Origin: Macrostomum hystrix
Taxonomy: Eukaryota > Animalia > Platyhelminthes
Length of the DNA stretch: 64,000 bases
Assembly (NCBI GenBank): GCA_950097015.1
Contig: CATNEN010000039.1
Coordinates: 11,718,001 to 11,782,000, forward strand
Direction: 5' to 3'
In this document: piece after piece, positions 6,481-58,445 of the stretch
How the letters are laid out: each line of letters begins with the position of its first letter
Position numbering within the stretch: the first letter of the stretch is position 1
Position numbers and translations under genes: made by a program
Notes under the pieces: generated by a model
Database searches by the model: none
The model's input: only the letters and a program-made list of their open reading frames with translations
What the model was told of the DNA's origin: nothing

Positions 6481-6910
6481 CCACGGCCCTGAGACCCATT
6501 GTTAGAATGCTTGATTATAGTTTGAGTTTGAGTTTTCTTATGTCTGATCGAAACTCGCAAAAACACAATGGCTATTCTCCTTTCGGGAGCAAAGTGATTT
6601 CAGTCACAGTTTTAATTTTCTCTTTAAATATCAATATTTCATTTTTTGTTTTAATACCTTTGCTTGCAAATTTCAAATATTTTATTCACCTAAAATTAAT
6701 CTCATGCATGCTACTGCTTTTCTATCGCCTTTTTTAAATCGAATCGTTCAGCCTTGTTACCAACATCAAATAAACAAAAAAATTCAGCACCCAATCGGCG
6801 TGCGCATTGCAATAATAATAATTATTATTATTAGTATTAAAGTATTTATAATGGTGTATTTGGGATATTTATATTTATAATATTTATTACATATCGTCAT
6901 ACCTCAGTGG

Positions 6911-9900
6911 GATCTCAAACTCTCAAAGATCCCAAACTCTCAAAGATCCCAAACTCTCAAAGATCCCAAACTCTCAAAGATCCCAAACTCTCATGGATCC
7001 CAAACTCTCATGGATCCCAAACTCTCAATGATCCCAAACTCTCAAAGATCCCAAACTCTCAATGATCCCAAACTCTCAAAGATCCCAAACTCTCAAAGAT
7101 CCCAAACTCTCAAAGATCCCAAACTCTCAATGATCCCAAACTCTCAATGATCCCAAACTCTCAAAGATCCCAAACTCTCAAAGATCCCAAACTCTAAATG
7201 ATCCCAAACTCTCAATGATCCCAAACTCTCAATGATCCCAAACTCTCAATGATCCCAAACTCTCAATGATCCCAAACTCTCAAAGATCCCAAACTCTCAA
7301 AGATCCCAAACTCTCAATGATCCCAAACTCTCAATGATCCCAAACTCTCAATGAACCCAAACTCTCATGGATCCCAAACTCTAATGGATCCCAAACTCTC
7401 AATGATCCCAAACTCTCAAAGATCCCAAACTCTCAAAGATCCCAAACTCTCAATGATCCCAAACTCTCAATGATCCCAAACTCTCAATGAACCCAAACTC
7501 TCATGGATCCCAAACTCTCAATGATCCCAAACTCTCATGGATCCCAAACTCTCATGGATCCCAAATTCTCAATGATCCCAAACTCTCAATGATCCCAAAC
7601 TCTCAATGATCCCAAACTCTCATGGATCCCAAACTCTCATGGATCCCAAACTCTCATGGATCCCAAACTCTCAAAGATCCCAAACTCTCAATGATCCCAA
7701 ACTCTCAATGATCCCAAACTCTCAATGATCCCAAACTCTCATGGATCCCAAACTCTCAATGATCCCAAACTCTCAATGATCCCAAACTCTCATGGATCCC
7801 AAACTCTCATGGATCCCAAACTCTCATGGATCCCAAACTCTCATGGATCCCAAACTCTCAATGATCCCAAACTCTCATGGATCCCAAACTCTCAATGATC
7901 CCAAACTCTCAATGATCCCAAACTCTCAATGATCCCAAACTCTCAATGATCCCAAACTCTCAATGATCCCAAACTCTCATGGATCCCAAACTCTCATGGA
8001 TCCCAAACTCTCATGGATCCCAAACTCTCAATGATCCCAAACTCTCAATGATCCCAAACTCTCATGGATCCCAAACTCTAATGGATCCCAAACTCTCAAT
8101 GATCCCAAACTCTCATGGATCCCAAACTCTCATGGATCCCAAACTCTCATGGATCCCAAACTCTCAATGATCCCAAACTCTCATGGATCCCAAACTCTCA
8201 TGGATCCCAAACTCTCAATGATCCCAAACTCTCATGGATCCCAAACTCTCATGGATCCCAAACTCTCAATGATCCCAAACTCTCAAAGATCCCAAACTCT
8301 CATGGATCCCAAACTCTCATGGATCCCAAACTCTCATGGATCCCAAGCTCTCATGGATCCCAAACTCTCAAAGATCCCAAACTCTCAATGATCCCAAACT
8401 CTCAATGATCCCAAACTCTCATGGATCCCAAACTCTCATGGATCCCAAACTCTCATGGATCCCAAACTCTCATGGATCCCAAACTCTCATGGATCCCAAA
8501 CTCTCATGGATCCCAAACTCTCAATGATCCCAAACTCTCATGGATCCCAAGCTCTCATGGATCCCAAACTCTCAAAGATCCCAAACTCTCAATGATCCCA
8601 AACTCTCAATGATCCCAAACTCTCATGGATCACAAACTCTCAATGATCCCAAACTCTCATGGATCCCAAGCTCTCATGGATCCCAAACTCTCATGGATCC
8701 CAAACTCTAATGGATCCCAAACTCTCAATGATCCCAAACTCTCAATGATCCCAAACTCTCAATGATCCCAAACTCTCAAAGATCCCAAACTCTCATGGAT
8801 CCCAAACTCTCATGGATCCCAAACTCTCAATGATCCCAAACTCTCAATGATCCCAAACTCTCAATGATCCCAAACTCTCATGGATCCCAAACTCTCATGG
8901 ATCCCAAACTCTCATGGATCCCAAACTCTCAATGATACCAAACTCTCAATGATACCAAACTCTCAATGATACCAAACTCTCAAAGATCCTAATCTCTTCA
9001 AGATCCCAAACTCTCATCGCTCACAAACTCTCATCGCTCACAAACTCTCATCGCTCACAAACTCTCATCGCTCACAAACTCTCATCGCTCACAAACTCTC
9101 ATCGCTCACAAACTCTCAATGATCCCAAACTCTCAATGATCCCAAACTCTCAATGATCCCAAACTCTCATGGATCCCAAACTCTCAATGATCCCAAACTC
9201 TCAATGATCCCAAACTCTCATGGATCCCAAACTCTCATGGATCCCAAACTCTCATGGATCCCAAACTCTCATGGATCCCAAACTCTCAAAGATCCCAAAC
9301 TCTCATGGATCCCAAACTCTCATGGATCCCAAACTCTCATGGATCCCAAACTCTCAAAGATCCCAAACTCTAATGGATCCCAAACTCTCAAAGATCCCAA
9401 ACTCTCATGGATCCCAAACTCTCATGGATCCCAAACTCTCAATGATCCCAAACTCTCATCTCATGGATCCCAAACTCTCATGGATCCCAAACTCTAATGG
9501 ATCCCAAACTCTCAATGATCCCAAACTCTCAATGATCCCAAACTCTCAATGATCCCAAACTCTCATGGATCCCAAACTCTCATGGATCCCAAACTCTCAT
9601 GGATCCCAAACTCTCATGGATCCCAAACTCTAAATGATCCCAAACTCTCAATGATACCAAACTCTCAAAGATCCCAAACTCTCATGGATCCCAAACTCTC
9701 ATGGATCCCAAACTCTCATGGATCCCAAACTCTCATGGATCCCAAACTCTCAATGATCCCAAACTCTCATGGATCCCAAACTCTCATGGATCCCAAACTC
9801 TCATGGATCCCAAACTCTCATGGATCCCAAACTCTCAAAGATCCCAAACTCTCATGGATCCCAAACTCTAATGGATCCCAAACTCTCAAAGATCCCAAAC

Positions 9901-10160
9901 TCTCAATGATCCTAAACCCTACTGATTCCAATCAAAGTATTGAAAACTCTCTACTCTCATTGTCTTCAGTGTTCAGCAAGATTTACAATGGACTCTCATG
10001 GATCCCAAACTCTCATGGATCCCAAACTCTCAATGATCCCAAACTCTCATGGATCCCAAACTCTCAATGATCCCAAACTCTCATGAATCCCAAACTCTCA
10101 AAGATCCCAAAATCTCATGGATCCCAAACTCTCAAAGATCCCAAACTCTCAATGATCCTA
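6911..10160. repeat. 17-bp satellite (GATCCCAAACTCTCA[AT/TG/AA])n, about 3.2 kb
   Basis: Period-17 array with three interspersed unit variants, a short CGCTCACAAACTCTCAT sub-block near 9017-9115, and an embedded copy of the flank at 9908-9993. Confidence 0.97.
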
Positions 10161-11044
10161 AATCCTCACTGATCCTAAACCCTACTGATTCCAATCAAAG
10201 TATTGAAAACTCTCTACTCTCATTGTCTTCAGTGTTCGGCAAGATTTACAATGGACTTGGCTATCGGACACAACCAAACTATAGCTTAGCGGATTCAATA
10301 CTCCTAGTGTAATTCGATTATTTCAAGTTAATCGCGGTCGACCAAAGCGGAGTCGAGGCCGGCAATGTAATCCGACTTAAATAACTGCCGAGCGCAGACT
10401 AGTATGCAACTATTACTTGCCTACATGTCAGCACACATAGATGACAATTAGCAGTTGTAATTGAATTTCCCCAACTAGACTTTGGGGGACTAGTAAGCAA
10501 CGTGTATCTCTCCTCCTACAGTTTGAATTTGTATAGCTACGAAAACTAGCCTATGGATTTGTATCGTTCCTCTGTATACTGACCCGCCACAGAGCCTACA
10601 GGAACTCGCTGCTACCCCTACACGGACTCCGCTAGCAACTAGCAAACACTAAATAAACTGCGGCGCACAAACGTGCCTGTGGGTTAAATCAAGCAAGCTG
10701 CTAGTCTGAGTTGTAGCCAATCCCTGGTCCTTTGAAGGTCGAAGTCAAATAGGCTGCTCTGGTACATAGCTGTCAAAGTGAAGCATTTTCGACACATTTT
10801 AATTTGCTAATAGCTTCATTGAGCAGGTTAAACTGTCTCTAATTTACCTGCGTCGAGTAGGTGCTGATTTTTTTTGTTTATTTTGCGTTTATAACGAGGA
10901 AATACGAGTACATACGAGTATCTAATTTCAACTAGGCTATAAAAAACAGCAAATCATAAAAGTGTAAGGAATCTAACAAAATACTCAAATGCCTTCATTA
11001 AAAACGTTATATTTGAATCCAATTAAAGCTTTCTTAAATTTAAG

Positions 11045-11308
11045 TATGTGTGCATTCCTGCGGCATTAAAATTATCGCATTTTGTTCTCGGCAGTTGAGA
11101 TTTTGAAATTTTGAGCAGTGCCAGTCACTTTCTCGATGAATTTATTCACTAGATGGAAATATAAACGGACCAATCGAACCTAACAAATAATACGAACTTC
11201 ATCATTCTCTACATGGACTCTACACTTTGGGCATGTTCAATTTTCATTGGCTGTTTGTGGTTTTGAAGACGAAATCGGGACATTGTGCGCCTTTGTTCTG
11301 GGTTAGAG
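11045..11308 (-). mobile_element. Second, inverted and diverged copy of the LINE 3' fragment at 6118-6480
   Basis: Its reverse complement aligns to 6118-6420: 42 identical bp, then shared blocks such as GATTGGTCCGTTTAT and AATAAATTCAT.GAGAAAGT. Confidence 0.75.
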
Positions 11309-11367
11309 GTTATTGTTAGGTACTTTTCTTAGCTGATTTTTTCCACCCACTGATTTCAGTATCTTAT

Positions 11368-11590
11368 TGTCTCATCTTTCACGTGTCTCATCTCTCCCGC
11401 GTCTCATCACTCCTCGGTCTCGCCTCCCCCGTGTCTCATCTCTCCGTGTCTCATCTCTCCGTGTCTCATCTCTCCACTGTCTCATCTCTCCCCTGTCTCA
11501 TCTCTTCCCTGTCTCATCTCTCCCCTGTCTCATCTCTTCCCTGTCTCATCTCTCCCCTGTCTCATCTCTTCCCTGTCTTATCTTTCCGTT
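11368..11590. repeat. CT-rich minisatellite, same family as 1-800
   Basis: GTCTCATCTCTCCC units. Confidence 0.9.
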
Positions 11591-12727
11591 GTCTTTTCTC
11601 GCCCGTGTCAATGGTTCTGACTGTTCTCTTGTTGATTTTTCTTTTTTATTTTAATCACGTAAGATATTATACTCGTAGTGATAGCTCTTCCGTATGGTCA
11701 GTGTTAGATTCCTTCCCTGTACTACGGTTAGGAAAACTGGGCGTAATAATATTAAGAAGTTTTCCTTACTTCGCTCATTAATGGAATTTTCCGTCAGCAA
11801 CGCTCTCTTGCCCAGGGTAAATCAGTGAAGAATTGAAGGAAACTAAGAATAGTGCTTAAAAAGATTTGGATAGCCTGAAAACCAAAAAGATGTGCATTTT
11901 TTTACAATAGATACCAAGCTTGCGCCAGCGAGGTGGCAATTAGGACTCTCGTACTTGTCACTGTCTGCTCATATACGAGTAATTACATTGCCAAAGCAAG
12001 TTTAGTTTAGCTACCGAAGGTTTGAAAACACACAAACAAATTCGGCTAATTTTAGCTGCATTTTAGCTCGTATTCTGCAGTGCATTAACTTGAAAATACA
12101 CACAGATGACAGGCGTTGATGAGTCTCATAGTCATGACAATGACCTAGGTAGAAATTTCCGAGCAAAATTAACGCTAAATCGAGTCTTGCCATCTCGGAT
12201 ATCATACCTTCCCGTCCAGACTCGTTAAGCAAAGGTAAAATTTAATGAAAAACAAACAAAAAAACATTTTATTGGACTTCATCAGTTCCTGCCCATTGCG
12301 AATTTCCATTTGTTTACCGTTCTTTTGTGTGTATTTTACTTCTTTTTGCTTTTGCGCCGCAAAAGATAATAAACAAACTTCGCAAAAGTTATCCGACTAG
12401 AATATCCGACTCGTAGACACGTCTTCTCGCTTTTTTTAGAATTTGGGCAAGCCTGAACACAATGGTTAACAGCGGCTCGTTTCAGCACTATCATCGCCCT
12501 CATTCGCGAGCAAGACAGACTTAAGCTGCCCTAATAAAAACAATTTTTATTGTGCAAAAAGTAAAAGAAAAAAACGAATTGTCTGCTTCATCGTGGCAGT
12601 GACCCTCAGTGACAATGAAACTAATTCAGTTAGTGTCTGGGCAGTGACACGCAGCAGAAAAAAAATTGTTGTCGGCCCAACAAGAGGAGCCACCCCAACG
12701 ACCGGAAAAACGTGAGCATTTCGATGG

Positions 12728-12735
12728 CATAAATA
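12728..12735 (+). promoter_or_regulatory. Candidate TATA box (CATAAATA) of the peptide-precursor gene
   Basis: TATA-like 8-mer about 105 bp upstream of ATG 12839. An ATTAAA poly(A)-signal candidate lies near 13297. Confidence 0.35.
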
Positions 12736-12838
12736 CCGAAGCTTTCGGGCGGTGCTGAGACCTCCAACAACCAGCTCGAGCTCACAGCTTCTCAACCAGT
12801 TTCATCGGAATAAGAATTGGCTTCACACAAGCTCAGAC

Positions 12839-13105
12839 ATGAGGTGGCAACTCACTCTCGGACTTCTGCTCTGCGCAGCTCTGGCAGCTGCCAGACCGAG
12901 CCAGGAGATGTCGGACGAGGACGATGAGTCTCTGCAGGCGCTGGAGGCCCTGGCGGACATGGACGAGCCCGACATGACTGAGCAGAAGGCCATGGAGCTG
13001 GAGAAGAAGTGGCTGCGACTGCGCCGAATCCGCATCAGGTGGAGGCGCGTGTATCGCATCGCCCGCACCGCCTACAGGATCTACCGGCACTTCGGCAAGA
13101 AGTGA
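12839..13105 (+). CDS. Secreted prepropeptide, 88 aa; probable cationic amidated antimicrobial peptide
   Basis: Signal peptide MRWQLTLGLLLCAALAAA, acidic propiece (14 D/E), KK dibasic site, 28-aa peptide WLRLRRIRIRWRRVYRIARTAYRIYRHF (11 Arg), then the GKK amidation signal and stop. Single exon with GC3-rich codons against AT-rich flanks. Confidence 0.85.
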   Translation: MRWQLTLGLLLCAALAAARPSQEMSDEDDESLQALEALADMDEPDMTEQKAMELEKKWLRLRRIRIRWRRVYRIARTAYRIYRHFGKK

Positions 13106-13880
13106 GCGGTAGTGCTGGACCTGCTGGCACATCGAGGCTCCTGACCGACTCCGCCCACGACCTGCCCAGTGCTCAGAACTACTGCACACTGACTCTATTT
13201 AGTGTACACACCTGACCGTACATTGTACAATCTGCTGCCCGCTAGGAAAGCTTTACGGAACTCAAGTTTTAATTCGCAAGAGTGCACCTTTCTCTAATTA
13301 AAAAAATGTGGGATTCAAAATTTTTATAAATATGCCTAGCAAACTCTTCAATCGTGTTTGCATTAACAAATTGTTTTTTCTAAAGACACTTTTTGTTAGT
13401 GTCTCAAGCAATTTAAAAATCAAAAGCTTGCTAAACGGGTTGCTAGGAAAATATTGTCATAGCCGAACATCTTGGCACCGACACCACCGAAAAATGGCAG
13501 TTAATGATGCTGTGGCAGAGTAGCTGGGATTCTCCTGAAAGGCCTTAATTTCGACGACTTCAATGCCGACTCTTCGAGCGAAGCTAGTGCCGCCCGTCGC
13601 AGTGCATCGAGAAGCGACATCGAGACAGGCAAGCTGGACGGATGAGCCTGTACTCGCCGGGCTTGATGAACCGTCAGGCACTGCCAGCCGCCTGTCGGCC
13701 AGGTAATCTATAAGGTCTGTGTGGCTGCCGCTCTGTCTAGACCTCTCATCTCGACGTAACACTGCAGCGCGAAGCACGGGCTTAGCAGGCTCGCGTGCGG
13801 ATTAGCAGGCTGGCTCCCAGCATGGCCCACCAGTCTGGAATGAGACTCGGTGCAGCAGGTGACTTGGCGTGAGCGCTTAA

Positions 13881-14218
13881 TTATTATTGCGGGAGGGCTG
13901 CGGCCAATGGCGCCTCATTTGGTGGCTCCAGACCCACTGCCAGCGAAGAGGCTGCCCATTTCGCTGACTCCAGAGCACACACGCACACAGATAGCGCACA
14001 CAGGCACACCACTCACACAGGTGTGTACATCTGCCCTGACTTTCTCATCGTCAGGCAGTCTACACTCTCACTGTGCCTTGGAGGCTGGTCCTCAAGGGCA
14101 TAAATTGCACGACAAGCCCCCAAGCCTTCTCTCCGCGGCTGCGCCCAAAATAAATGTGGCTTCGCTGCGGAATCGAGCTTAAGTGACCTTGGTGCAAGAG
14201 GCGAACGCGTTAGACCGT
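13881..14218 (-). mobile_element. tRNA-derived SINE, family A
   Basis: The minus strand has a tRNA-like head with a B-box-like GCTCGATTCC, a body shared with other copies, and an (AAT)n tail. CTTAA direct repeats at 13876-13880 and 14219-14223 are a candidate target-site duplication. Confidence 0.85.
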
Positions 14219-14534
14219 CTTAACGAGAGTGCAGGCCTTCGTCAGTGCCTTGGCCTTGTGCATCTGATGGCGAAAGCGCGGCAGGACCAGAGGAGCTATG
14301 ACTCTGGCAAAATCAAGGAACAGCCAGTCGCCGAAGCGACAACCACTGTCAATTGCAGCTCCGCTACTGTTGCAAGGATCGGTGCCTGGGATTTAGACGC
14401 CTGCTCTGACCTTCTGATCTTACCAGACCAGAAGCACGAACAAAACCAAGCAGTCTAAATCTCCTTACCGACTGCGCGAAGGATTAGAATAGCGGATTGA
14501 TTAATTTTACGCTCACTCTAAAAATACGCAGTTT

Positions 14535-15065
14535 TCTAGGTACTAAAACTAACAAACTAAGTAACTAAACGCAGCCCTACCGGCCACGAGTGGCCCAGAG
14601 GTCAGGGGGGGAGCGTCAGATCGCGCGCTTGAGGGCCAGCGACCGTACCCGCATCACCGTGTCCGCCTGGTCGGGGCGTCCATCAGCAGCCGGTCGATGT
14701 AGCGAGCCGTGCGACCCTGCCCACGCCTGCGCGGTCCCTGCAGCGTCAGCAGCAGAACGTCCTGCATCGGCTCCGGGTAGTAGGCTTCTGCCCGAATCAC
14801 GTGCCCGGCCAGCCGCAGCCGCCGCTGACTCAGCAAGACAGTAGGCCGCGTCAGGCGCATTCGCTTGTACAGGGCGCGGGTCGACTCGCAGCCGGGAACC
14901 GAACGCGGCGCGTAGCAGAGCCGCGTGCGCCGCGTCGAGCTGCCTCTCGAGCGTTTTGGTCAGCGTCCAGATCTCAGTGTTATACAGCAAGGCGGTCTCC
15001 AGGACCGACGCAAAGAGCTGTGACCTGGCGCTGTCGCCGAGAGCCTCAGAGAGCAACACCATCCG
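14535..15065 (-). mobile_element. 5'-truncated RTE-like LINE fragment (post-RT C-terminal region)
   Basis: LFASVLETALLYNTEIWTLTKTLERQLDAAHAALLRAAF and, in a shifted frame, SQRRLRLAGHVIR...RRRGQGR..YID. These match the LLYG.E.W / RRLR..GHV.R motifs of RTE-type elements. Short TTAG-like tail. Confidence 0.85.
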
Positions 15066-15518
15066 AACAGACTGAAAACTGGGAACTAAAACTAAAGACT
15101 GAAATCGAATTGCTATTTATTCCATTGGTAATTGCTTCCAGACACACTCGTTGCGTGAGAGGATTACGGATAAATTGAATGACCGAAGGACAAGCGACTT
15201 GAAATGCGAGCGCCCTAATCTTGCTCTAATATTTTTTCAATGTTCTTGCTTTCATACACGGTGCATGGCTAAAAAATTGTATCGTTCTGATGCTTAAACA
15301 ATAGCCGCAACAAAATATTTTTATTTAAAGTGTTTATTCAACATAGTTTACTTAAAAACAAAAGCATTCCAGGGGTGAGTATTAGGCGCTTACTTGACAA
15401 AAAGCTGATAAAAAAAGGCTTTCAGATCCTTGATATTGTAAGCTGCTTACAATATAAATTTTTAACAAAACTGAGTTGGTTCATAAAAACAAAGGCTTTT
15501 CGGTCATTCAGTCCGTCT

Positions 15519-18500
15519 CTACAGCGTGGATAGCAATCGAGCCATCTTCTCAGTCAGCTGCACGTTTCTCAACTTGAATGGCAAGCCGGTGAAGTCCGCA
15601 GCTTCGAGGCGCTGTTTGCGACAGCCGTCTCGCTCAACACCGTCTGGTGGGCGCTGGCCCGTCGTCTGGCGTTCCACAACAGCGCAGAACGCGCAGAACA
15701 GTCGGCTATCTAGCTGCTGCTGCTGCTGCTGCTGTTCTTGGCTGACACCGGCGTCGACAAGACCGCATAAATCGAGCAGCTGGTCGAGCCGATCTCGAGT
15801 GATGCCGCCAACGAGTAGGTCAGAGAGACATCTGTCAAGGTCCTGTGATGTTTGTGTTTGAATTGGCGTTGGGGTTGAATTCAATGAACTAACAATGCTA
15901 TTAAAGTACCAGCATGCAAAGACCGCAAACCCATGATTTCCAGAAAAAAATGAGAATTTGACTTTTACGTTTGACCGTTTATTTTTTAGCAATTAGAGAC
16001 AACTGGAGTCGCACGGGAGGTTCTTATAGTGATTTACTTGAAGAGGCGTTTTATCATAAAATACTCACTGCCTACTATTTATAATAATATAAAATACAAT
16101 TTTCTGCTTGATTTTTTCGTCTATGGCCTCTTGAAATATTTTTCATCGAACAAATTTCTCAGTCAAGACGAATGCCTGGCAAAAAATCGGCCAGTAAGTA
16201 TTTTTCCACAAACCAAGAGTGTTGCGTTGTTTTAATTATTTTTCAAATAATTAGATGAAGCTGATGAGTATTAGCAATTTGAATTTCACTTGGACATCCA
16301 CGACCATAGTCTGATAATTTATCTCGGCTTTAGTACGAGTACATGACAAAACACAACTAACATGGAATACAAAAAAAATACGATGCACTTAACTGACTGT
16401 AAGTTTATTGATGAGAACTCACCATCCTACTCACAGTAGTAATTGTAGGATAATTGTTGTGATATTGATATTAACATTTTGAGTTGTAGGTACACGGTAC
16501 TGACTATACGGTATGCGTGGATCTTTCCTGCTTATTATTTTACATCACCAAGCGCTTGACCAGGATGCTTAGATCAAGGTGCACAAAGTGCAGCAATAAA
16601 TCAGGCATTAATTACCTTGATGCTGACAGTGTTAGTAGAGGGATTGCGATACCTCTGAAACAGCTTCTGGTAGAGAAACAGCCGCCTAGAGGATATGACA
16701 GCGAACTGCCGGATGTAGGCCTTGGGCTCCATGCCTGCGCAATGGAAATGACACGTAGTAAAGTTAGTAAAAACGCATTTAATTGGTGTCGATGCTAATT
16801 TATTACTTTACTTACGTGAGTTAGAATCAAACTAGCCCAAGGGCAAACAATTTGAAACAATGTACCTGTGTAAGACACTTTTAAAATCCCATAGTGCTTT
16901 AATTTAAATAAGGGAATGTCAAGTTAAGACTCTAGACTAGAGCTCGAGGTCAATCCACCTCTCACCCCAGTCCTTCCCATGGTACCCCCCGGTAAACTTC
17001 CCGGTTTCAGACGGTTTAGTTCGAGGATTGACCTCAGGCTCCACTGTATCTGTGTGCGTGTGTGCTCAGGAGTCAGCGAAATGGGCAGAATTGCCTACTC
17101 TCTGGCTGCGGGTCTAGTGCCACCAAATGATGGGCCACTGCTCGCAGCCCTCCTGCAATTATTATTATTTATTATATACGCTCGTATTAAAAATCAGGTT
17201 GTTTGTGATGGTCCCTCCACCCAGACTGAACAGCTACGCACAGCCTTTTGGAACTTGGGCAACCTGAAAGCCATAGCTTACTCAATATTTAGCAATTAAT
17301 TAATTAGTCTAAGCTATTCTGGCTTCTAGGCACCTGGCCAATGATTGACAGGTTTGACGAGTCTGGACGTGGGCCTGGACACTGCCCTAACCGTCCCCCC
17401 ATTTCCGAGCCTAGTTTAGGATTGTGTCCGCCGCGAACTCATATGGTGTGTTTCGTGCGAAGAGACGCAGCTTGTACGTTTAAGAAGCACGTACCTAGAT
17501 AAGTTAAGGTTTTTAATATGCAGCCCAGAAAACGATCCTTACTCTCGAGATCCTGAAGATCAAACGGCAGCTCGAAGCGCGTTGTCAGAGGTCCTGAGTT
17601 CGCCTTGCTGCCGGATGCTTTCTGAAGTGTCGACGAATCGGTGTTTAACTTTTTAGGCATTGCAAAATTAAAGCAATGCTTCAGAGCTGCTCAGCATTAT
17701 CAGCGGCAATAAATTCTGCGCTCCTTATTTGACTAACGTCGGATCGCCAGCCGTGCCAAATTAACTCAGCTGCGCACTTTATTAGAATTTTCAACGTCTA
17801 CTTTGATAGATGCACTAAGGAGGCCTGAATAAACTATATTAAGAGACTCTCAAGGCACTTATTCAATGCACTTCCGCAAATTTGGGCGGCACCCCGGATG
17901 CCCGCTTGTCATCGGCCAAGTGGCCGCAGCACAGATTGAGTTTAAAACTCCTCGTTGCTTCGTTGGAATATGAATTAGATGGCCTGTGGGCCTATGCTAG
18001 GGAATAACTGAGCGGGAACTGTACAGTATCGATATCGACCTATTCATTATGCTTTACAACTCTTGATGCATTCTTATAAACGCTACATTGAAATTTTGCA
18101 CATTTATGAGCACTGACCTTCAAGGTATTTTCGTCCTGATTTGTGCTGAACCAGTCAATTGAAGTGTCTCTCTAAAACAATGAAATAGAAAAATTCTGCA
18201 CAAATTCTGTACAGATTTTTTTGAGGCAGTTTACATTTGCACTCTGCCCCAAAGCTTTGCCCTGAATAAATGCGGCCTTGGAATCGAGCTCAGGGACCAT
18301 GTTGCAAAAAGCGAAGGCGTATACTTTAGGAAATTTGAATACAAAAAACGGCATACTTACGCGCTTTCTGTTGCCTGGCAACGCATGACCACCTGGGTGA
18401 CCAACACGCAGATGTGAGCTGAGTGGCTGCGCTGACTGTGACGTCATAGCCATTGGTAAAATAGTCTGCGACACATTGTCGGAAAATCGGTCACGCTGAG

Positions 18501-19598
18501 CGCCTTCTTTGTGGGCTACCAGCCGCTCAATTCCCGATATTGGGATTGTTGATAGCGAATCGGAGCTTTTGAAAAGGGCAGGTAAATACGAGGGCAGTGA
18601 TTTAACAATCCCAAATAACTTTTATCTAAACAATTACTTTTTTTCAAAGGCGTTTCTCCAAAACTCACTTTTGTTGTAGCACATTTCTACCGCGTTTCTG
18701 TCTACGAATGAGAATTACTGTCGGCTGCTGCTGCTGCTCCTCTTGATGCAGTATCGACACCATTGTCTGTTGCTCAGGTGTGTTCAGTGTTTCAGAGGCT
18801 TCGAAGTTTGCGGTTCCTATTCTTGTCCGATTCATAGCAGTTCTGTTGTCGTTTGAGTTATTTCCTGACTGCTGCTTGGCATGAGTTCCTCTCTGCTGGT
18901 GTGCAATACAACAAACATTTATACTATTGCAATACTGAGTTTGTTGGTCCACAAGCTACAGATCAAGCATTAAATTAATACAAAATAAAACTGAAACATC
19001 GTTTTGACCCGAGTAAAGATTTCATTTCAGTCCTCATTTTAATACGAGCTTAAAATGTTCGAACTAATGTTTTAGCCTAGAGTGCATCGCCTAGCCTAGC
19101 CTAAAATGACAAAAAATGAGAAAGTAGTTCAGATAGCACAATAGAGCAACTTTCCTGTACTATTATTAGGATTTTTTGATAGAATTAGGCATTGAAAAAT
19201 CTGCTGAAATCTGTGAGAAAATATGACAAGTTAAGCTCTTCGTCTCAACGGTTTTTACTCAAAGCCCCGAACTATGAATGCCACTGGGCTTACAGCACCT
19301 ATGAGCTGCAATCGTTAACGCACATTAATATGTTGCATTGTCGAGCATGCGTACCTTTCCGTTTGTAGTTTTTAGCGTCCCCTCAACCGATGCAGCAGGA
19401 CTCTGTTCCTCGGCAAAGCTTTTTGCGATGAGTGTCGCTTGTTCTGAAAGAATTTTCGGAAATTAATTTGACGAATTGTTGGCTACGCGTTACTAGAAGT
19501 GCACATCCAATTGATTGAAAAAAGCGAAACTATAAGTCATAGCGAGGAACAGCGCATGTTCTAGTGTTAGATATAAACGAGAAAATCCGGTTTGGGCC

Positions 19599-19642
<44 letters not shown>

Positions 19643-22600
19643 TGCAGGAGGGCTGCGGGCAATGGCACATCATTTGATGACAGTTGACCCACAGTCAGCG
19701 AGAGGCAATTCTGCCCATTTCGCTGACTCCTGAGCACACACGCACTGTACGCAGGCACACGCTCACACAGGCAGTGTACACTTCACTGTGCCTTGGAGGT
19801 TGGCCCTCAAGGGCGTAAATTTCACGACAAGCCCCCAAAGCCCTCTCTCTGCGTCTGCGCCCCAAATGAAGGTGACCTCACCGTGGTGCGAGAGGCAAAC
19901 GCGTTAACCCCTCTGCCACCGACCCCCCTTCTGTGGCAGACCAGACGGTTTGGGCCATACGTACAGCCAGCTATTGCGCTTCGCATTCAAGGGCATTCTA
20001 GGCCACAGCCTCCCTCCCTCGTTTTTGACTTTAAGTTTTTGTCACTTTTTCGTTCGTATGGTAAAAAACGACCAAGTGACTCCTGTTCTCAGACGCCATG
20101 CGCAATGGTCATGTAATTTGTTCAGACCACCACCCACCATCTTCGGAATCCATGTCAGCCTCATCTTCTTCCATTACTGGCATCTCGACTACCGACGCTT
20201 GTCTCTGTCCGATCGTCACGTCAAGTTTGTTGCTAAATTCAACGTCAAGCGTTGCAGATGACGTTGCAGCGCCGGTCACCATTGAAGCTGCTGGCGATTG
20301 ACGCATCGATCGCCAGGAGTCTGTGATCGCCAGGCTGCTTCGCCGACGACCAGCTGCGGCCGCGGCAGCGGCGGCTGCCACCACGGAGTCGCGCCTAGTG
20401 TCCGCCGGTTTGCCTTGATAGATCGGCTTTGAAGAAGCCACCTGGATGCGCGGCTGACTGCTGATACTGGCCGCTGATGCGGCTCCGGCCGCCATGCCTT
20501 CCTGTAAATCGTAGAAGATTAACTACGATTAGCGTTGCGATCCATACAATGCACATGACCTTTACTCAAGCCTTTCTCACCTGTTCAGCGAGGATCTTGC
20601 TTTCCGCCGCCTCATCTCCGGATGCGTAAAAAAACTCAGCTGTTGTCAAGCTGTTCCTTTGTAGTGAAGTCGCACCGCTTGACTGAGCCATCGACAGTCT
20701 TCGTCGTTGATATGGCTGCTGTGGCTGCTGCTGCTGCGGTGTCCAGCGCTTCACTGTGGACGATCTGCGTCGATTGCGCCACTTCAGCTGCAGTGACTCG
20801 CCTAGAGGAGCCACCGAACCTCGACGAGTGCTATCGCCGCGGTCTCGTGCTGACAGCTCGCCATCTTTGGCCGCCAACGGAAACGATTGAATGATCAGCT
20901 GTGGTCTTTCCTCTTCAATTTCGGCCTCGTTTTCCACATCAAACTCGTCTTCCATCAAAGCATTATTGGATTGCTCAGCAGTATTTTCCCCGGCTGGCTC
21001 AGAGATAGCAAAGCTCAGCTCACCTTGGAGCATCAGCTCTGAGCTGAAGCTCACCTGTGTGATCTCGCGTCGTGATTCATCAGACAGCTGCGGCTGGTCT
21101 TCTGGCCTGCCAAAGTCGCCGATTTCTCTCTGGCTAGTGAGAACCTGCGCGCCATCTTCGAATTCTCCGAATGTTCTCTCTTCGTCTTTGCCAGAAGTGG
21201 ATTCCTCCGAGTCGCCTCTTTCGGATTTCATTTCCCCTGCTCCACTGCCTTCAATGCTTGGGAAATTTTCTAAATGTCCCGCGGTAATCTTTGCCGCTAA
21301 TCTCTGCCCAAGAGGGTTGTAATCGGCCGGTAGCTGCTGCTCCTCAGTAATCATCTCAGGCTTTCGATGTGCGACAGTCGAGGATGGCATCAAAGGAGCA
21401 GTTCTGGCCTGTGATTTCGGATTCGGCGCAACCTGTGCAGCAGGTGCACTTTCAGGTGCAGTTGGAATCGCCCGAGGTGATCTGGTGGAGATCCCATCGT
21501 CAAGCTTGCTGCTCCTGCTAATTTTCGATGTACCTGTACCTTTTTCGCTGAAATTGACTTGGCAGTCTGTGGGACGTGTTTGGGAGTTACTTATTAACTC
21601 TCCTCGTAAACTCAAATTTCCAGTTAGGGCAGTCTCTTACAGAATGAATTTTAGGAAAACCAATTTTCTTACTTCTGCATAAATCACAAAAACTCGAAGC
21701 GTTTTAATCGGGATTGAAAGATCAATTTGCGAGCAAAGCTAACAAATCGGCTTATTACAATAAGCTAGGAGACGGATTAAGCAACCTTGGCATGGCCCCA
21801 TGAACCGTTGCCCCTGACTCCTTGTGGCGTGTCCGCTTTGGTCGATTCTTAAGGGCTATTTCTAATAAATCCTTGACTAAACTACTTAACTGACCCGACT
21901 TGAAGTAATTTCAATTGAATGAGAAAATTAACTCATTACTCTTGACAGTTAATAGTTTTGATGGGCATTTTTTCTTGCAACATCAGCTCTAAATAATTGC
22001 ATCTTAATATTCTTCAGCCTTCTTGAAAAAATCTTGTGTGGCTATCGAACTGTTCGAGTTTGCTAGACCAATCTTATAAAAATTATGTCTTATAAAAATG
22101 CCATGAACTTTGAACAAATGTTTGAAAAAACGACCTAACAAATGTTTTATTATTGGAAACTATGTGATAACAAAGCAATAGCCACAAGGAGTAGAAGGAC
22201 GGGAAAGTTAAAGTTTAGGAGGCTAGTTTTCGCCCAAAAATATACTCCGGTGAAGGGAAATTACTAATTGAGTTGACCAAATTTTCAGGAATGCAGGATT
22301 ATAAAACTAGTTACGTAAGCTAAGTTAACTCGTACAATAAAAGAAGTGCATTCGTATTTCTTCCAAAAAGCGATAACCTTTCACTAGTAGTGGTGATAAA
22401 AAAAATAATAACTAAATTAACGTGCCCCTATAGGGCCAGAAGTGCAGCCGACAGCACTGCCGCAGCTATTGTACGGCGCATTATAATGCTACGTACGGCT
22501 GTTCAGTCCATCGACATGGGGGGACGCCACACCCACCCTCAATTATTCCGGCTAATGCTGGTACCCATTTAACAGCTGGGTTAACTGAAATAAAGCAGAG

Positions 22601-28133: not shown

Positions 28134-29438
28134 TCATAAAAAGTGTGTCACCTCGGTCTCTATCGAGGTGTCCAGGCTAATGATTTGACAGTCGCGGCTC
28201 GTATGCGAGTATCTGAAATCATCAGAACGGTCGCCACTGTCACCAGACGAGGCTGTGCCTTGCAGTCGGTGCATTCGCATGCAGTCAGTAGATTGGCGCT
28301 TCTGATGCAAATGCAGATGCTGCACCTGCAGCTTCCGCTGTCTCAACTGCTGCTGGCGCAACCTGTAGCGTCTTGGACAAAAGGCCCGTCCAAAAATGTC
28401 GACCAGATCGCCGCGGAATTTATTCGACGAAGCAGCGTAGACAAAAAAGTTTAGTACCGAGTCGGTTACGAGAAGCACGTTCGTGATGCTGTCCGGGTGG
28501 ATTGCGAGCTTCTCAGGCAGGTCGGGGTTGTGCTGCAGAATCGTGGTCGAGATGAAGGTTGGGATCTCGAAGATGCAGAAAAGAATGGCCAACCCCAGCA
28601 CCATTTGGCTGGCTCGAATCGAAGACACCAGGCTGCTATCACCGCCGTTGCAGCCGTTGCCTCCGCAGCTTCGTCGAACTGTCTCTGCGCGCTCAAGACG
28701 GTTGCGACGAATGTAAATCCACATCACGATGGTTGGAAAGGGGATCAGCACTGTCGGTATGAGGGCCTGGAAGATGTAGATGGCCCAGTGTACCAGATCA
28801 GTCTTCAGATAGGGTCGCATCACAATCACAATATCGCCGGGTTGTTTGGCTGGGGCCAGCACAGCAGCTGCATTCTCGAAAGGCAGCAGCTGCTCGGAGT
28901 TGGTGCAGAGCACGCCAACACCAGCCAGGTTGGCCAGCAAAGCCAGCACCAGGGCGGCGCAAATGACGCAGACGAACGCGATGGTCAGGCGACAGCGGTT
29001 GAAGAACAGGAAGCGCCTGGAGGCCAGCGGTCTGACGATCACCTCGCAGCGGGCGGCGCTGATTAGTAAGACGTTCCAGTTGCGAATCGAAACCAGTGCG
29101 TTGATGGCGATGTGAACGCAGCTGGTGAATGTGTGGCTGAAGACGCTGTGCCAGTGCTCGAAGTTGCTGCGCACAATTCCAGCCTCCGTAATGAGGGCGC
29201 ACTGCAGACAGATCTCGGTGCACGAGATGGACAGCAGCGAGAAGCGCACGGCTCTATTGTCGAATTTCTGTCGCGTGAACACAAAAAGAGACAGAGAATT
29301 GACTAGCAGCGCGACCAGGGAGATAGGCAGGATGACGAGGCAGTTGATTCGCTCAGTCAGGACGTAGCTGTGATCGTGCAGCTCCAGTGTGGTGTTGATC
29401 TCAGCCGGTTGGCAGTCGTCCTTGATGAAATGCAGCAT
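28134..29438 (-). CDS. Rhodopsin-family (class A) orphan GPCR, peptide/FMRFamide-receptor-like, ~434 aa, intronless CDS
   Basis: Seven hydrophobic segments: TM1 LVNSLSLFVF, TM3 end ISAARCEVIVRPL (ARC for DRY), TM6 FCIFEIP, TM7 DSVLNFFVY, helix 8 KFRGDL. N-glycosylation site NTT. The first in-frame ATG is at 29438; the track ORF starts at a TTG just after a splice-acceptor-like site near 29520. Confidence 0.88.
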   Translation of the reverse strand: MLHFIKDDCQPAEINTTLELHDHSYVLTERINCLVILPISLVALLVNSLSLFVFTRQKFDNRAVRFSLLSISCTEICLQCALITEAGIVRSNFEHWHSVFSHTFTSCVHIAINALVSIRNWNVLLISAARCEVIVRPLASRRFLFFNRCRLTIAFVCVICAALVLALLANLAGVGVLCTNSEQLLPFENAAAVLAPAKQPGDIVIVMRPYLKTDLVHWAIYIFQALIPTVLIPFPTIVMWIYIRRNRLERAETVRRSCGGNGCNGGDSSLVSSIRASQMVLGLAILFCIFEIPTFISTTILQHNPDLPEKLAIHPDSITNVLLVTDSVLNFFVYAASSNKFRGDLVDIFGRAFCPRRYRLRQQQLRQRKLQVQHLHLHQKRQSTDCMRMHRLQGTASSGDSGDRSDDFRYSHTSRDCQIISLDTSIETEVTHFL

Positions 29439-31147
29439 CTTCGACGGCACACGAGGCTGTGGAGGGTTGTGCCAATGATGGAAAAGATCATTTTGATGCA
29501 GGCCCACACCTTCCAAGCACCTAAGATCTAAAGAATCTTTTAATCTTTAGATAATCGAAAGAATCTCATAGATTTCTGGCTCTATAGACCTAATTTTTAG
29601 TAATATCGAGAAAGATTTTTTGCTCCATTTAATTTTCCAACTCGGTGTGACCGTATTGCTGCGCATGGGATCAGAGACATCCATACAGGTATTCTGTGGC
29701 TAAAATCCCAAAAATATGATCAGCTTGCGGGAAAATATTCGAGGGGAATTTCTTGTGGCTCATACTGTAATTTTTTAAACCCATCAGGTAACTGATAAGA
29801 AATATGAGCTTCGATCATTTGAGCTGTGGAATTTGATTCGATGATCAGTTTAGCTCTGAAATGTTGGTCTGCATGAACTTTTTCAATTACTTTAACGTCA
29901 CGTGGTTCAATAGGCTCAAATATTACAAACGGTTCAGTCCAGAGAAGAGCTGACCTCATGCTTAATCTATGCTTAGATAGGAAACAAGGGATGGCCTCTC
30001 TTAGTGCTCTGCTGCTAGTTAGCAGAATGACGAATGACGGAACTCAGCGCGGCTGCGGAATGCTAATTTGGGTGCCGAAATCAGTCATCAGTCATCAGTC
30101 GCAGGGAGACAAACAGCAATGTCTGTTCAGGGCACGCAGAACAGAGGATTAAATACTATGATTCAGACAGCTTCATCTTGCAAGCCTTTTCGTTAGAAGC
30201 TATTTGAGGAACACATGATAGAGGCCCGTTCAGCTGGCTGCTTGACAATTCGGGCACGCTTTTTCATTTTCAGCGAACGAATCTCATCAACTGTTGGAAT
30301 ACTAATTTGCAGCAAAGCAAGCTTGAATCATGCCGTGTGCTGGAAAGGTGGACGAAGACTCAGAACTGGCGCCAGTGCATAGCCGTGGTCCCCTCTGCCT
30401 CGCAGAGCCTGCGTACAGCCCCTCTGAAGCTCAATCGGGCGGTATGGCACTTTCAGTATGGCCAAAATCAACGTTCTCTGACGTTTGAAGGCCTAAGAGC
30501 ACCTCGTTGTTTGCCCGGTACCTCAGGGACACCAGGATGGCCGTAATCTATCCCACTGCCAGTGTGGATGACACCGATAGATCCCTGCGAGAAACACAGG
30601 AGGTAGTCTGGTTGTCGCAGTGGCCAGCGGAATTGGTGGTCATTTTCCTCTCCTCTGCATCCACCTGCAGCTACGTCAGGTTAGCTATACCGTGAACTTA
30701 TAAAAAACATGTGATACTTGAACTTTGAGAATGAAATCAGTTGTTAGCTTACCTTTACGTGAATAAATGTAAGTGAAGATGTTCTGAAAACTGACTAGCC
30801 TAATGATTTGTTACAGTTTTTAATTAAAAATAATGGAAAAGTTGTTCCTTTCCTGTGTCGAATCGATCCGCTTGACTGATAGGTTTTAAAGGCTAGAAGA
30901 GAATTCGAGATGAAGAACTCAGTGGGACTGAATTGAGCTCAAAATATAGAATTCGGAGCAGACAGTAAACTAAAGTTCACTAATTGAGCCAATCAGATAT
31001 AAGCCAATCGGGAACTGGGCGAATGCGTCAGGAATGGTAACAAAATGAAGGATGATAACTCGTTGGAGGGTTCAATATTGAATTGACAACACGATACGAG
31101 TCTAAATCATAAAACTAATAGATGATGAAGCGACTTAAGCGACTGAA

Positions 31148-56300: not shown

Positions 56301-58445
56301 CAAGTATTCTACCCCTAACTAAGGGCCACCTGACACACGAGAAGACTATCGTACCGAATGGAGCGATGAAATGTTGCATTTGACTCGCGAGCAGCTGGAA
56401 ATCAAGCGGTGCGTGAGAGACCGGCGGAAGCGGAGATCAAATTATTCAGGTGGGGCTGCTCGCGCTTCGATAGGGTCGCGGCAATGAGACTTGCGCAGAG
56501 GCTGAGATTTCGAAAGGAGATAAAGGCTGATGTAGAGAAATCGGAAGCTGAATCGCGGAGTGCAACGAATCCGGGGACTCGAGCCGAAGGGGAAAGAGTA
56601 TGGATGAGACACTGTGCGACAAGGGCAGAGGCGCAGACCCAGCAGGTGAAGCGAACGGGATGTCACTGCGGAAGTAAGAAAGAACCGAGCAGGAGAGATG
56701 GCACAGGTGATTAGAGTATTTTTAATACGAGCTAGAAAAGGTATAGAAAAATAATTTTGCTAAAATCATTAATACGAGTATGAAACACAAAAAACGAGAA
56801 TGTAGTGATGAGTTTCTGAAAGTCTCTCATTTTAACGCACCGAGGTCATAATTTTCAAGGGAATGTTTTAGGGCCTTGTCGGTCAGATTACACGCAGGCC
56901 GAAGCTACAAGCTGCGTACTATAATGGCAAAAGCGTCCCAATATTACTCCGGGACTTCCTCAGGCCTCCCAGGTGCAATCATTTTTTCGTGGCTGGCTCT
57001 GTCGCCGCCGCTGGAAGCAGATTGTGGAGATGTACATCAAATCCGAGCACGCCGAGCACATGCGCAAGCGGAATGGCATCGTGTTCGGCCTTGTCGAGTG
57101 CGAGCAGGAGTACGTGCAGCAGATCAGTGTGTTGGTGTCATGCTTTCTGCGGCCCTTCAAAATGGCCGCATCCGCCAGAAAGCCGATTATCTCCCACGAG
57201 GACGTCAATTCGATATTTCTAAATGCGTGAGAGGCGATTTTAAAGGCAATACACAAGCATAATATGCACGGTGCATGCAAAATAAATAATATATTTCTAC
57301 ATTTCCAACGTTTTTAGCGAGACCCTGCTGTTTCTGCACCAGATCTTCCTGCAGGGGTTGAACAGCAAGATGGACAACTGGCCCACCCTGCAGCTGGGCG
57401 ACCTGTTCGATATGCTGCTGCCGATGCTGGCCATCTATCAGGAGTACGTACGCAACCACCACTTTAGCCTGCAGGTGCTGGCCGAGTACAAGCAGAAGCC
57501 TGATTTTGCTGTACTGCTAAAGCGCTACGAAGACAGGCCGGTGTGCGAGGGCCGCAGCTTGGAGACCTTTCTCACCTATCCGATGCACCAGATTCCACGG
57601 TACATCATCACCCTGCACGAGCTGCTGGCCCACACGCCGCACGATCACGTCGATCGTCAGCAGCTGGAGTTTGCGAACAGCAAGCTTCAGAACCTGTCTC
57701 ACGTGATGCACGACGAAGTCTCCGAGACGGAGAACATTCGAAAGAACCTGGCCATCGAGCGGATGATTGTCGAAGGCTGCGACATCCTGCTAGACGTCAA
57801 TCAGATCTTCGTCAGACAGGGCACGCTAACCCAGGTTGCCGGACCTGATCGCCAGCGCATTCGACCCCGGCTCGGCTCCTTCAGCTCCACCTTCGGTAAG
57901 GACTCAAAGAAGGAGGCAGTGCGCCAGGTGTTTCTGTTTACTAACCATCTCATTCTGACTACGCGAGCGTCGAACGGCCGACTTCACCTCGTCAAGGTGA
58001 GTAATTAAAATTTGTCTATCTCATCATCAAGTCTTTACTATCGAAGAATCTCAGGAGAAAAATCTCTCAGGAGCTAAAAAACTAAACAGTCTAAAGCTTA
58101 ACAAGTCCTTGTACCCTGGGGAAATCATTCAGGACTTATTGTTCTCAATCACTGATTGATTTGTCTGATTTTTTCAGTCAAAGAAAATCAACAAGGAGGG
58201 TACTGAAGTATAATCTACTGAAAACATGAACCTGAACATGACACCTGTGCTTATGTGTAGCCATCAATTGAACGACTGGAAGTCTCGTTGTTCAATTTGT
58301 TGAAGTCGCTCGTTAGTGCACTCCTTATTATTTTCATATCTGTTACAGAACAATGGCAAGATTCCGCTGGCGGATTGCACCCTGTCTGAAGACACGAGCT
58401 CCGACTTCTTCTACTACGATGAAGATGAAAATCAGCCACAGCAGC

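Follow-up and report, generated by a model that had tools for sequence, protein, structure and literature searches.

The precursor gene and its family

The window analysed here is the whole 64-kb stretch C39:11718001-11782000 of the Macrostomum hystrix assembly (220,453,370 bases in 42 contigs), and the searches for paralogues covered the entire genome. At 12839-13105 on the forward strand, the window holds an uninterrupted, intronless reading frame of 88 residues followed by a stop codon, for which a secreted and processed peptide precursor is predicted (Table 1). The gene belongs to a family defined by its leader, by the order acidic propiece-KK-cationic peptide, and by a private promoter, all three of which it possesses. 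Each family gene is one conserved cassette (private promoter, signal, acidic propiece, and Lys-Lys) joined to a different cationic peptide. We regard it as secure that a real gene lies here, without introns and under selection, and that it encodes a secreted prepropeptide belonging to a family confined to Macrostomum; for transcription of the window copy, each step of processing, the tissue of secretion, and an action against microbes, we rely on inference.

By itself, a frame of 88 codons is nothing special, as 37 open reading frames (ORFs) of at least 60 amino acids (aa) overlap positions 8000-20000 of the window, and the case for a gene thus depends on the family evidence. The ORF is placed beyond chance by a genome-wide family, by purifying selection on the signal peptide, and by a conserved promoter block. 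The first-pass annotation of this DNA had described an 18-aa signal peptide, a propiece with 14 acidic and 2 basic residues (net charge -12), and KK preceding a Cys-free 28-mer at 13010-13093 (11 Arg, no acidic residue) that runs into GKK-stop; translation reproduces each of these parts exactly. The N-terminus reads as a signal peptide both on inspection and by its conservation across the family, and its cleavage site is predicted from the Ala-x-Ala rule.

Searched in six frames with the 88-aa product, the genome returns 58 matches, 52 of them at E <= 1e-3 (7.8e-53 to 1e-3), and all but four are free of internal stops. These matches represent 57 loci, two of them falling in one gene that carries an insertion. 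Intact genes are present at 51 of the 57 loci and yield 41 unique precursors and 36 distinct mature peptides; the other six (L024, L041, L042, L049, L052, and L054) are shortened or have no in-register start, and were left out of the counts. Paralogues in which signal and propiece are conserved and the mature region varies, as the first-pass annotation had led us to expect, are therefore found genome-wide, and the peptide loses the status of an isolated novelty that it was given there, its gene being one of about 50 in the family. The genes are clustered, among other places on C1 (16.87 Mb), C26 (1.14-1.21 and 1.44 Mb), C28 (0.21 Mb), C3, C2, and C27. The window copy (L001) is a singleton, and its closest relatives on the same contig are about 1.3 Mb away.

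The leader is the most constant part of the precursor. In a protein alignment of 34 sequences (31 proteins of this genome and three of Macrostomum lignano), M1, Q4, L9, C12, P20, and K57 are invariant, and W3, L10, L11, A14, A16, and A18 are each conserved in at least 90% of the sequences, the leader being of the type MKWQ-x-ALGLLLCAALA. The residue pair before the peptide is KK in 44 of the 51 intact genes, AK in five, EK in one, and SK in one. Gly followed by zero to two basic residues (G[KR]0-2) forms the end of the product in 41/51 intact genes and 27/36 distinct peptides. The mature parts span 9 to 37 residues with net charges of +1 to +18; they consist of 28% Arg, plus Ile, Val, Ala, Tyr, Leu, Phe, and Trp, and all but one (35/36) are without Cys. 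The types include Arg/Trp/Tyr peptides (window gene), amphipathic Ile/Val/Arg/Lys peptides (C26), Arg/Tyr/Phe peptides (C2), and nearly neutral ones (C10). Any of 12 different amino acids precedes the terminal Gly across the family. For this reason, and because the leader rather than the C-terminus is conserved, the RHF-amide neuropeptide that had earlier been kept as a possibility is unlikely.

At C1:16871846-16879231, four members (L004, L002, L003, and L005) stand in mirror order (-,+,-,+) with pairwise identical proteins, an arrangement that reflects either a palindromic duplication spanning about 8 kb or an artefact of the assembly.

Outside this genome, a family profile run against 1.84 billion representative proteins gives 12 matches at E <= 1e-3, all bearing the same leader. 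Ten of the 12 (not P0010 and P0014) were looked up, and comprise nine M. lignano hypothetical proteins and one unnamed contig of 929 nt from Logan. A second word-index search of proteins, made with the family alignment and scoring only the 8000 candidates sharing most words, returned the same three proteins as the first. The nearest public relative is M. lignano P0001 (79% identity), with which the window protein shares 15/18 residues of the signal, 30/39 of the propiece, and 23/27 of the aligned mature part. Within this subfamily, the mature part is thus at least as conserved between the species as the leader, which favours a constrained function over rapid evolution. The GenBank annotation of M. 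lignano is described as derived from a genome-guided transcriptome built from RNA-seq (PMC5730564), and the M. lignano relatives are therefore transcribed loci in a sister species.

Domain and structure resources provide no further relatives. Pfam gives nothing above cut-off for the window protein or for the 34 members (best for the window protein: HCMV_UL124, 15.9 bits vs. a cut-off of 27), a sequence search of the PDB gives one spurious match (E 0.14), and the best score in the ESM Atlas is 0.77, beneath any useful level. As far as the profile search of 1.84 billion representatives shows, the family appears to be restricted to Macrostomum. One of the 12 profile matches, P0010 (M. lignano, 634 aa), carries a family member without signal as its last 70 residues, fused to a large unrelated extracellular/transmembrane protein, and is probably a merged gene model.

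Promoter module, selection, and peptide structure

Nucleotide similarity between the window gene and its paralogues extends upstream of the coding sequence (CDS). By blastn, homology begins at 12697-12706 (L001 1359-1368), some 140 nt upstream of the ATG, and extends as far as the stop codon; upstream homology running into the CDS is seen in L002-L006, L009, L010, L012, L014-L016, L018, and L022. An alignment of 23 upstream regions contains the motif (C)CGGAAAMACGTG, a TATA-like box, and a further stretch of conservation, in which the start site and the 5' untranslated region (UTR) probably lie. The column ATA.A is kept in at least 80% of the 23 regions, and the upstream features persist even among subfamilies with about 40-50% protein identity.

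Across the 220-Mb genome, the pattern GGAAAMACGTG-N8-24-ATAWAW occurs at 35 distinct sites, and 32 of these precede a family ORF by 91-135 nt (median 127), compared to 7 for a reversed-pattern control. Downstream of the other three sites no family-like ORF is found, and their number fits the chance level. In the window the pattern matches once, and it matches in none of 100 shuffles. The family thus looks co-regulated by one promoter module, to judge from the distribution of this pattern. At the other end of the genes, 33/51 family loci have their first AATAAA or ATTAAA at a distance of 100-260 nt downstream of the stop codon, vs. 16/51 in a reverse-strand control.

Table 1. Features of the precursor gene and its flanks, in window coordinates.
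Feature	Position	Strand	Description
Promoter and 5' UTR block common to paralogues	12697..12838	+	blastn of L001 vs. other loci
Family-specific motif CCGGAAAAACGTG, core GGAAAMACGTG	12702..12714	+	Upstream alignment; 135 nt before ORF
TATA-like box CATAAATA	12728..12735	+	104 nt before ATG, 13 nt after motif; putative TATA role
Predicted signal peptide, residues 1-18	12839..12892	+	Translation; one Arg, 14-residue hydrophobic core, Ala at -3 and -1
Acidic propiece, residues 19-55	12893..13003	+	14 acidic, 2 basic, net charge -12
Lys-Lys, residues 56-57, presumed convertase cleavage site	13004..13009	+	Translation, family conservation
Predicted mature 28-mer, residues 58-85	13010..13093	+	11 Arg, 2 Trp, 4 Tyr; without Cys, Asp, or Glu
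Gly-Lys-Lys-stop, presumed amidation donor and basic residues for trimming	13094..13105	+	Translation
ATTAAA, weak candidate for a polyadenylation signal	13297..13302	+	191 nt after stop

Selection on the precursor was measured as the ratio of non-synonymous to synonymous substitution rates (dN/dS; pooled Nei-Gojobori method), after identical sequences had been collapsed, in aligned columns only and with indels of the mature region ignored. For 41 sequences dN/dS is 0.23 in the signal, 0.71 in the propiece, and 0.86 in the mature part; for the 17-gene subfamily that includes the window gene, the values are 0.20, 0.41, and 0.55, respectively. Because only aligned columns are counted, the divergence of the mature region is understated. 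The rise of dN/dS along the precursor, with the signal lowest, indicates genes under coding selection and is a gradient typical of antimicrobial peptide (AMP) and toxin families.

The first-pass annotation had remarked that the charge of the propiece nearly offsets that of the mature peptide. This is so for the window gene (-12 vs. about +11 to +13, the 28-mer being +11 before GKK trimming), and the same trend runs through the family: net charges of propiece and mature peptide are inversely correlated across the 41 unique precursors (Spearman -0.76), as well as after collapse to 13 clusters at 70% identity (Spearman -0.68, p 0.011). Neutralisation of a membrane-active cationic peptide by the acidic piece in transport would be expected to produce such a correlation.

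Within the 17-gene subfamily, the KK pair is dibasic in 17/17 members, and the two internal RR positions in 9/17 and 12/17. Compared with KK, this argues that the RR pairs are not conserved processing sites; further processing at internal RR, which had been suggested earlier, is accordingly not upheld in the sense of conserved cleavage sites, and the two pairs in the window gene are still possible targets of a convertase. In the genome, profile matches include nine to Cu2_monoox_C (PF03712; best E 1e-34) and 13 to P_proprotein, adjoining long open frames. With these domains encoded, amidating-type monooxygenases and proprotein convertases are plausibly present.

The AlphaFold2 model, computed from the 34-sequence alignment, has a mean predicted local distance difference test score (pLDDT) of 68.1 and a predicted template modelling score (pTM) of 0.29, and places helices at residues 3-18, 27-41, and 47-86. 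In block means of 10 residues, pLDDT is 75-87 over residues 51-80 and 71 over residues 81-88. Residues 14-28 of the peptide have a hydrophobic moment of 0.91 at 100 degrees (z 3.3), with 0/2000 shuffles as high, in agreement with the helical second half that had been proposed. The proposed beta-amphipathic first half is weak at best: the first 13 residues have a moment of 0.88 at 160 degrees, which 4.9% of shuffles equal or exceed, and nothing at 170-180 degrees, and AlphaFold2 draws one helix through the peptide. The 28-mer as a whole is moderately amphipathic (z 1.6 at 100 degrees).

Proposed role and alternatives

On balance, and with a little better than even confidence, we favour the reading that this is a working gene, intronless and one of about 50 in a genus-restricted family, whose product would be a secreted, convertase-cut, amidated, membrane-active peptide of host defence or microbiome shaping. 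The signal peptide would bring the precursor into the secretory pathway, and the acidic propiece (-12) would neutralise the Arg-rich part (+11 to +13) in transport. A proprotein convertase would cleave after KK, a carboxypeptidase would trim the C-terminal KK, and peptidylglycine amidating monooxygenase would convert the Gly to give a C-terminal Phe-amide. The freed 28-mer, predicted to have a charge of +12 and to be largely helical and amphipathic, would then bind and disrupt anionic microbial membranes, and may act as a host-defence or microbiome-shaping effector. The mature peptide has the cationic, amphipathic character of an AMP (11 Arg, no acidic residue, and the helical moment of residues 14-28), and the layout emphasised in the first-pass annotation (signal, acidic spacer, dibasic site, and cationic peptide with a Gly donor) is supported by the gene and reinforced by the family.

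Several points weigh against this reading. In the subfamily to which it belongs, the peptide differs little between species and is not hypervariable (23/27 identical vs. M. lignano P0001), and the dN/dS of the mature region never exceeds 1; for both reasons, the subfamily of the window gene bears no arms-race signature. An exact look-up of the window protein and nine paralogues in the protein collection found none of them present. The convertases assumed to act at KK could also cleave at the two RR pairs and at several RxR motifs, and PF03712 is common to amidating enzymes and to those of the dopamine-beta-hydroxylase type, so that the domain evidence is permissive, not decisive. The confidence of the AlphaFold2 model is moderate overall, and short peptides are often drawn as helices. 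Furthermore, very Arg-rich peptides may be cell-penetrating, nucleic-acid-binding, or cytotoxic to eukaryotic cells.

The alternative that survives best, unlikely in our judgement and still of some weight, is a reproductive secretory peptide from gonads or accessory glands, acting on sperm, eggs, or partner. Rather than general epithelial defence, its function would be, for example, egg or sperm protection, that of a seminal allohormone, or one in sexual conflict, and this reading may overlap with a role in shielding gametes from microbes. Lineage-restricted, fast-turnover secreted families are reported as typical of the reproduction-related genes of Macrostomum (PMC10468722), and many prostate-limited transcripts of M. 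lignano are described as having a signal peptide and no homologues (PMC5977470). However, searches with the M. lignano gene IDs and with the signal-peptide string found no literature link from the family to the gonads, nor did three candidate papers (PMC5816591, PMC4490696, and PMC5977470) connect the two, and an acidic propiece that compensates the charge of an amidated amphipathic cationic peptide is a hallmark of membrane-active peptides, unlike known seminal proteins. The family also occurs both in M. hystrix, which inseminates hypodermically, and in M. lignano, which mates reciprocally. If the family proved to be gonadal, it would instead be informative about how gametes are protected, or about sexual conflict, in a hermaphrodite model.

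A cytolytic toxin or deterrent, with eukaryotic cells as its target, is improbable. Such a peptide would lyse prey (diatoms or other small organisms) or deter predators. Venom and toxin families, too, combine a conserved leader with hypervariable cationic peptides (PMC5577615). The very high content of Arg and aromatic residues would be compatible with broad cytolysis, and a toxin and an AMP cannot be told apart by sequence alone. We know of no venom apparatus or predatory envenomation in Macrostomum, which counts against a toxin.

That the window copy is non-functional or untranslated, a decaying duplicate in an otherwise working family, is very unlikely. Gene death does happen in the family, as the 6/57 visibly broken loci attest, and the copy is a lone one amid satellites and dispersed repeats. 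Its open frame is nevertheless full-length, there is no damage to the promoter motif, the TATA-like box, KK, Gly-KK, or the downstream ATTAAA, and in comparison with the nearest paralogues, synonymous differences per site exceed non-synonymous ones in the signal and propiece.

Least probable of all is a neuropeptide or hormone precursor that gives RHF-amide or shorter fragments cut at RR: the dibasic site, the Gly donor, and the convertase and amidating-type domains do make up a neuropeptide toolkit, and one broken paralogue ends in ...RYIRFG, but the family has no conserved C-terminal motif before its Gly, keeps its leader constant while peptide charge varies so widely, does not conserve the RR pairs, and, with about 50 genes under one private promoter and no relatives outside Macrostomum among the looked-up profile matches, is unlike conserved neuropeptide families, including the flatworm FMRFamide-like and neuropeptide F (NPF)-type peptides, whose shared conserved amidated C-terminal motif was not found in it. 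The broken paralogue, L052 (C5:1140199-1141363), has its signal peptide replaced by a SASHLT-type repeat and its mature end is ...SRYIRFG-stop, which after amidation would presumably resemble the RYIRF-amide ending of flatworm FMRFamide-like peptides. This ending may be due to chance, or it may point to members that imitate neuropeptides or descend from them.

Extending the host-defence reading from the gene to the family, we propose, tentatively and at slightly less than even confidence, that these genes form the principal gene-encoded AMP arsenal of Macrostomum, within a phylum that has no canonical AMP family described, and that one promoter module (GGAAAMACGTG plus TATA) would switch on dozens of chemically different amidated cationic peptides together. 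If this is true, the family would provide, via M. lignano, a compact and transgenesis-ready model of how a combinatorial peptide defence is built and co-regulated and how it shapes the microbiome. Because RNA interference (RNAi), transgenesis, and positional RNA-seq are available in the genus, tests of expression, regulation, and loss of function are feasible. The peptides would add new linear Arg/Trp/Tyr-rich scaffolds to AMP collections.

Related peptide systems and genomic surroundings

The arminins of Hydra have a signal peptide, a long anionic N-terminal propiece, and an Arg-rich cationic C-terminal peptide ending in Gly plus basic residues. They are a taxon-restricted multigene family, in which internal RR pairs survive processing, and they shape the microbiome. 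Their layout is like that of the window gene, in a different phylum; the 12 profile matches include no cnidarian protein among the 10 looked up, in a library whose content of arminins is unconfirmed. The precursors of frog-skin AMPs (preprodermaseptin/brevinin type) likewise combine a conserved signal, an acidic spacer, and a dibasic site with a variable cationic peptide that is often amidated. Their modules are ordered as in the window gene, whereas the site is KR there and KK here, and lineage and gene structure are unrelated. PF03032, which we take to be the Pfam family of frog-skin AMP precursors, is not listed for any of the 34 family members at E <= 1.

A further comparison is with the myticalins of mussels, described as multigenic and taxonomically restricted; their signal is well conserved, their anionic region moderately so, and their linear Arg-rich peptide varies extremely (PMC5577615). 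Their Gly is often read as an amidation donor, acted on via carboxypeptidase E and the amidating monooxygenase (PAM), and activity has been measured (PMC5577615). As presented there, the myticalins resemble the Macrostomum family in being a lophotrochozoan multigene family that combines a conserved signal, an anionic region, a dibasic site, and a variable Arg-rich peptide. They differ in that their anionic region follows the peptide as a C-terminal extension, whereas the Macrostomum family has its anionic piece before the peptide; in their Lys-Arg site and three exons, as opposed to Lys-Lys in an intronless gene; and in their Pro/Arg-rich peptides, compared with peptides of Arg, Ile, Val, and aromatic residues in Macrostomum (PMC5577615). 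By these comparisons, the Macrostomum family shares its architecture with arminins and frog-skin peptides, and does not appear to be a member, by sequence, of the arminin, frog-skin, or myticalin families.

Flatworms are reported to be without the traditional lophotrochozoan AMP groups, and their AMP repertoire is stated to have been previously undescribed (Irvine et al., 2023; PMC10414684), which agrees with the earlier characterisation of this lineage as one with few described AMPs. A 2025 review gives the same account of the traditional groups, and describes the AMPs of free-living flatworms as barely explored. Irvine et al. (2023; PMC10414684) predicted more than 16,000 helminth AMP-like candidates, with the proteomes of free-living flatworms included, and measured some minimum inhibitory concentrations (MICs). 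Like the Macrostomum family, the candidates described there are predicted secreted cationic flatworm peptides, including linear ones; in contrast, the flatworm candidates are mostly cysteine-rich, and the main text has no occurrence of Macrostomum (PMC10414684). Compared by eye, fAMP-LP-17, a flatworm peptide tested in that study (PMC10414684), matches none of the mature peptides obtained here.

Our literature searches found no published account of such a Macrostomum family, and the supplements of PMC10414684, PMC10468722, and PMC5977470 may list members or their expression class. The kind of gene is known (precursors of linear cationic amidated peptides in lineage-restricted multigene families), and this family is new to print as far as those searches show. 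With about 50 genes, it is a concrete and testable candidate for the missing effector arm of flatworm immunity.

In the window, the gene sits between satellite arrays and an abundant dispersed repeat, and has no neighbour with a functional link to it. One array, at 6910-10180, consists of a 17-bp unit repeated 192 times and generates many spurious repeat ORFs; further arrays lie at 1-785, 2074-2652, and 11368-11609 (16-bp unit), with units of 14, 20, and 16 bp and a strong strand composition skew. The dispersed repeat, about 340 bp long, is located at 13878-14221, 770 nt downstream of the gene. It is like a short interspersed nuclear element (SINE) or a miniature inverted-repeat transposable element (MITE), with 2628 candidates in a first look at the genome and copies that are 86-88% identical. 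Dispersal of the family by a transposon was considered and rejected, because this repeat is genome-wide and lies near family loci merely because it is ubiquitous.

Two other coding regions were noted in the window. An uninterrupted ORF of 460 aa at 28134-29516 on the reverse strand has a sub-threshold match to the rhodopsin family of seven-transmembrane (7TM) proteins (22 bits vs. a cut-off of 30.5), and is possibly an intronless gene for a divergent G protein-coupled receptor (GPCR). At 57358-58008 on the forward strand, an ORF the size of an exon encodes a clear RhoGEF domain (E 2e-23) and forms part of a larger spliced gene.

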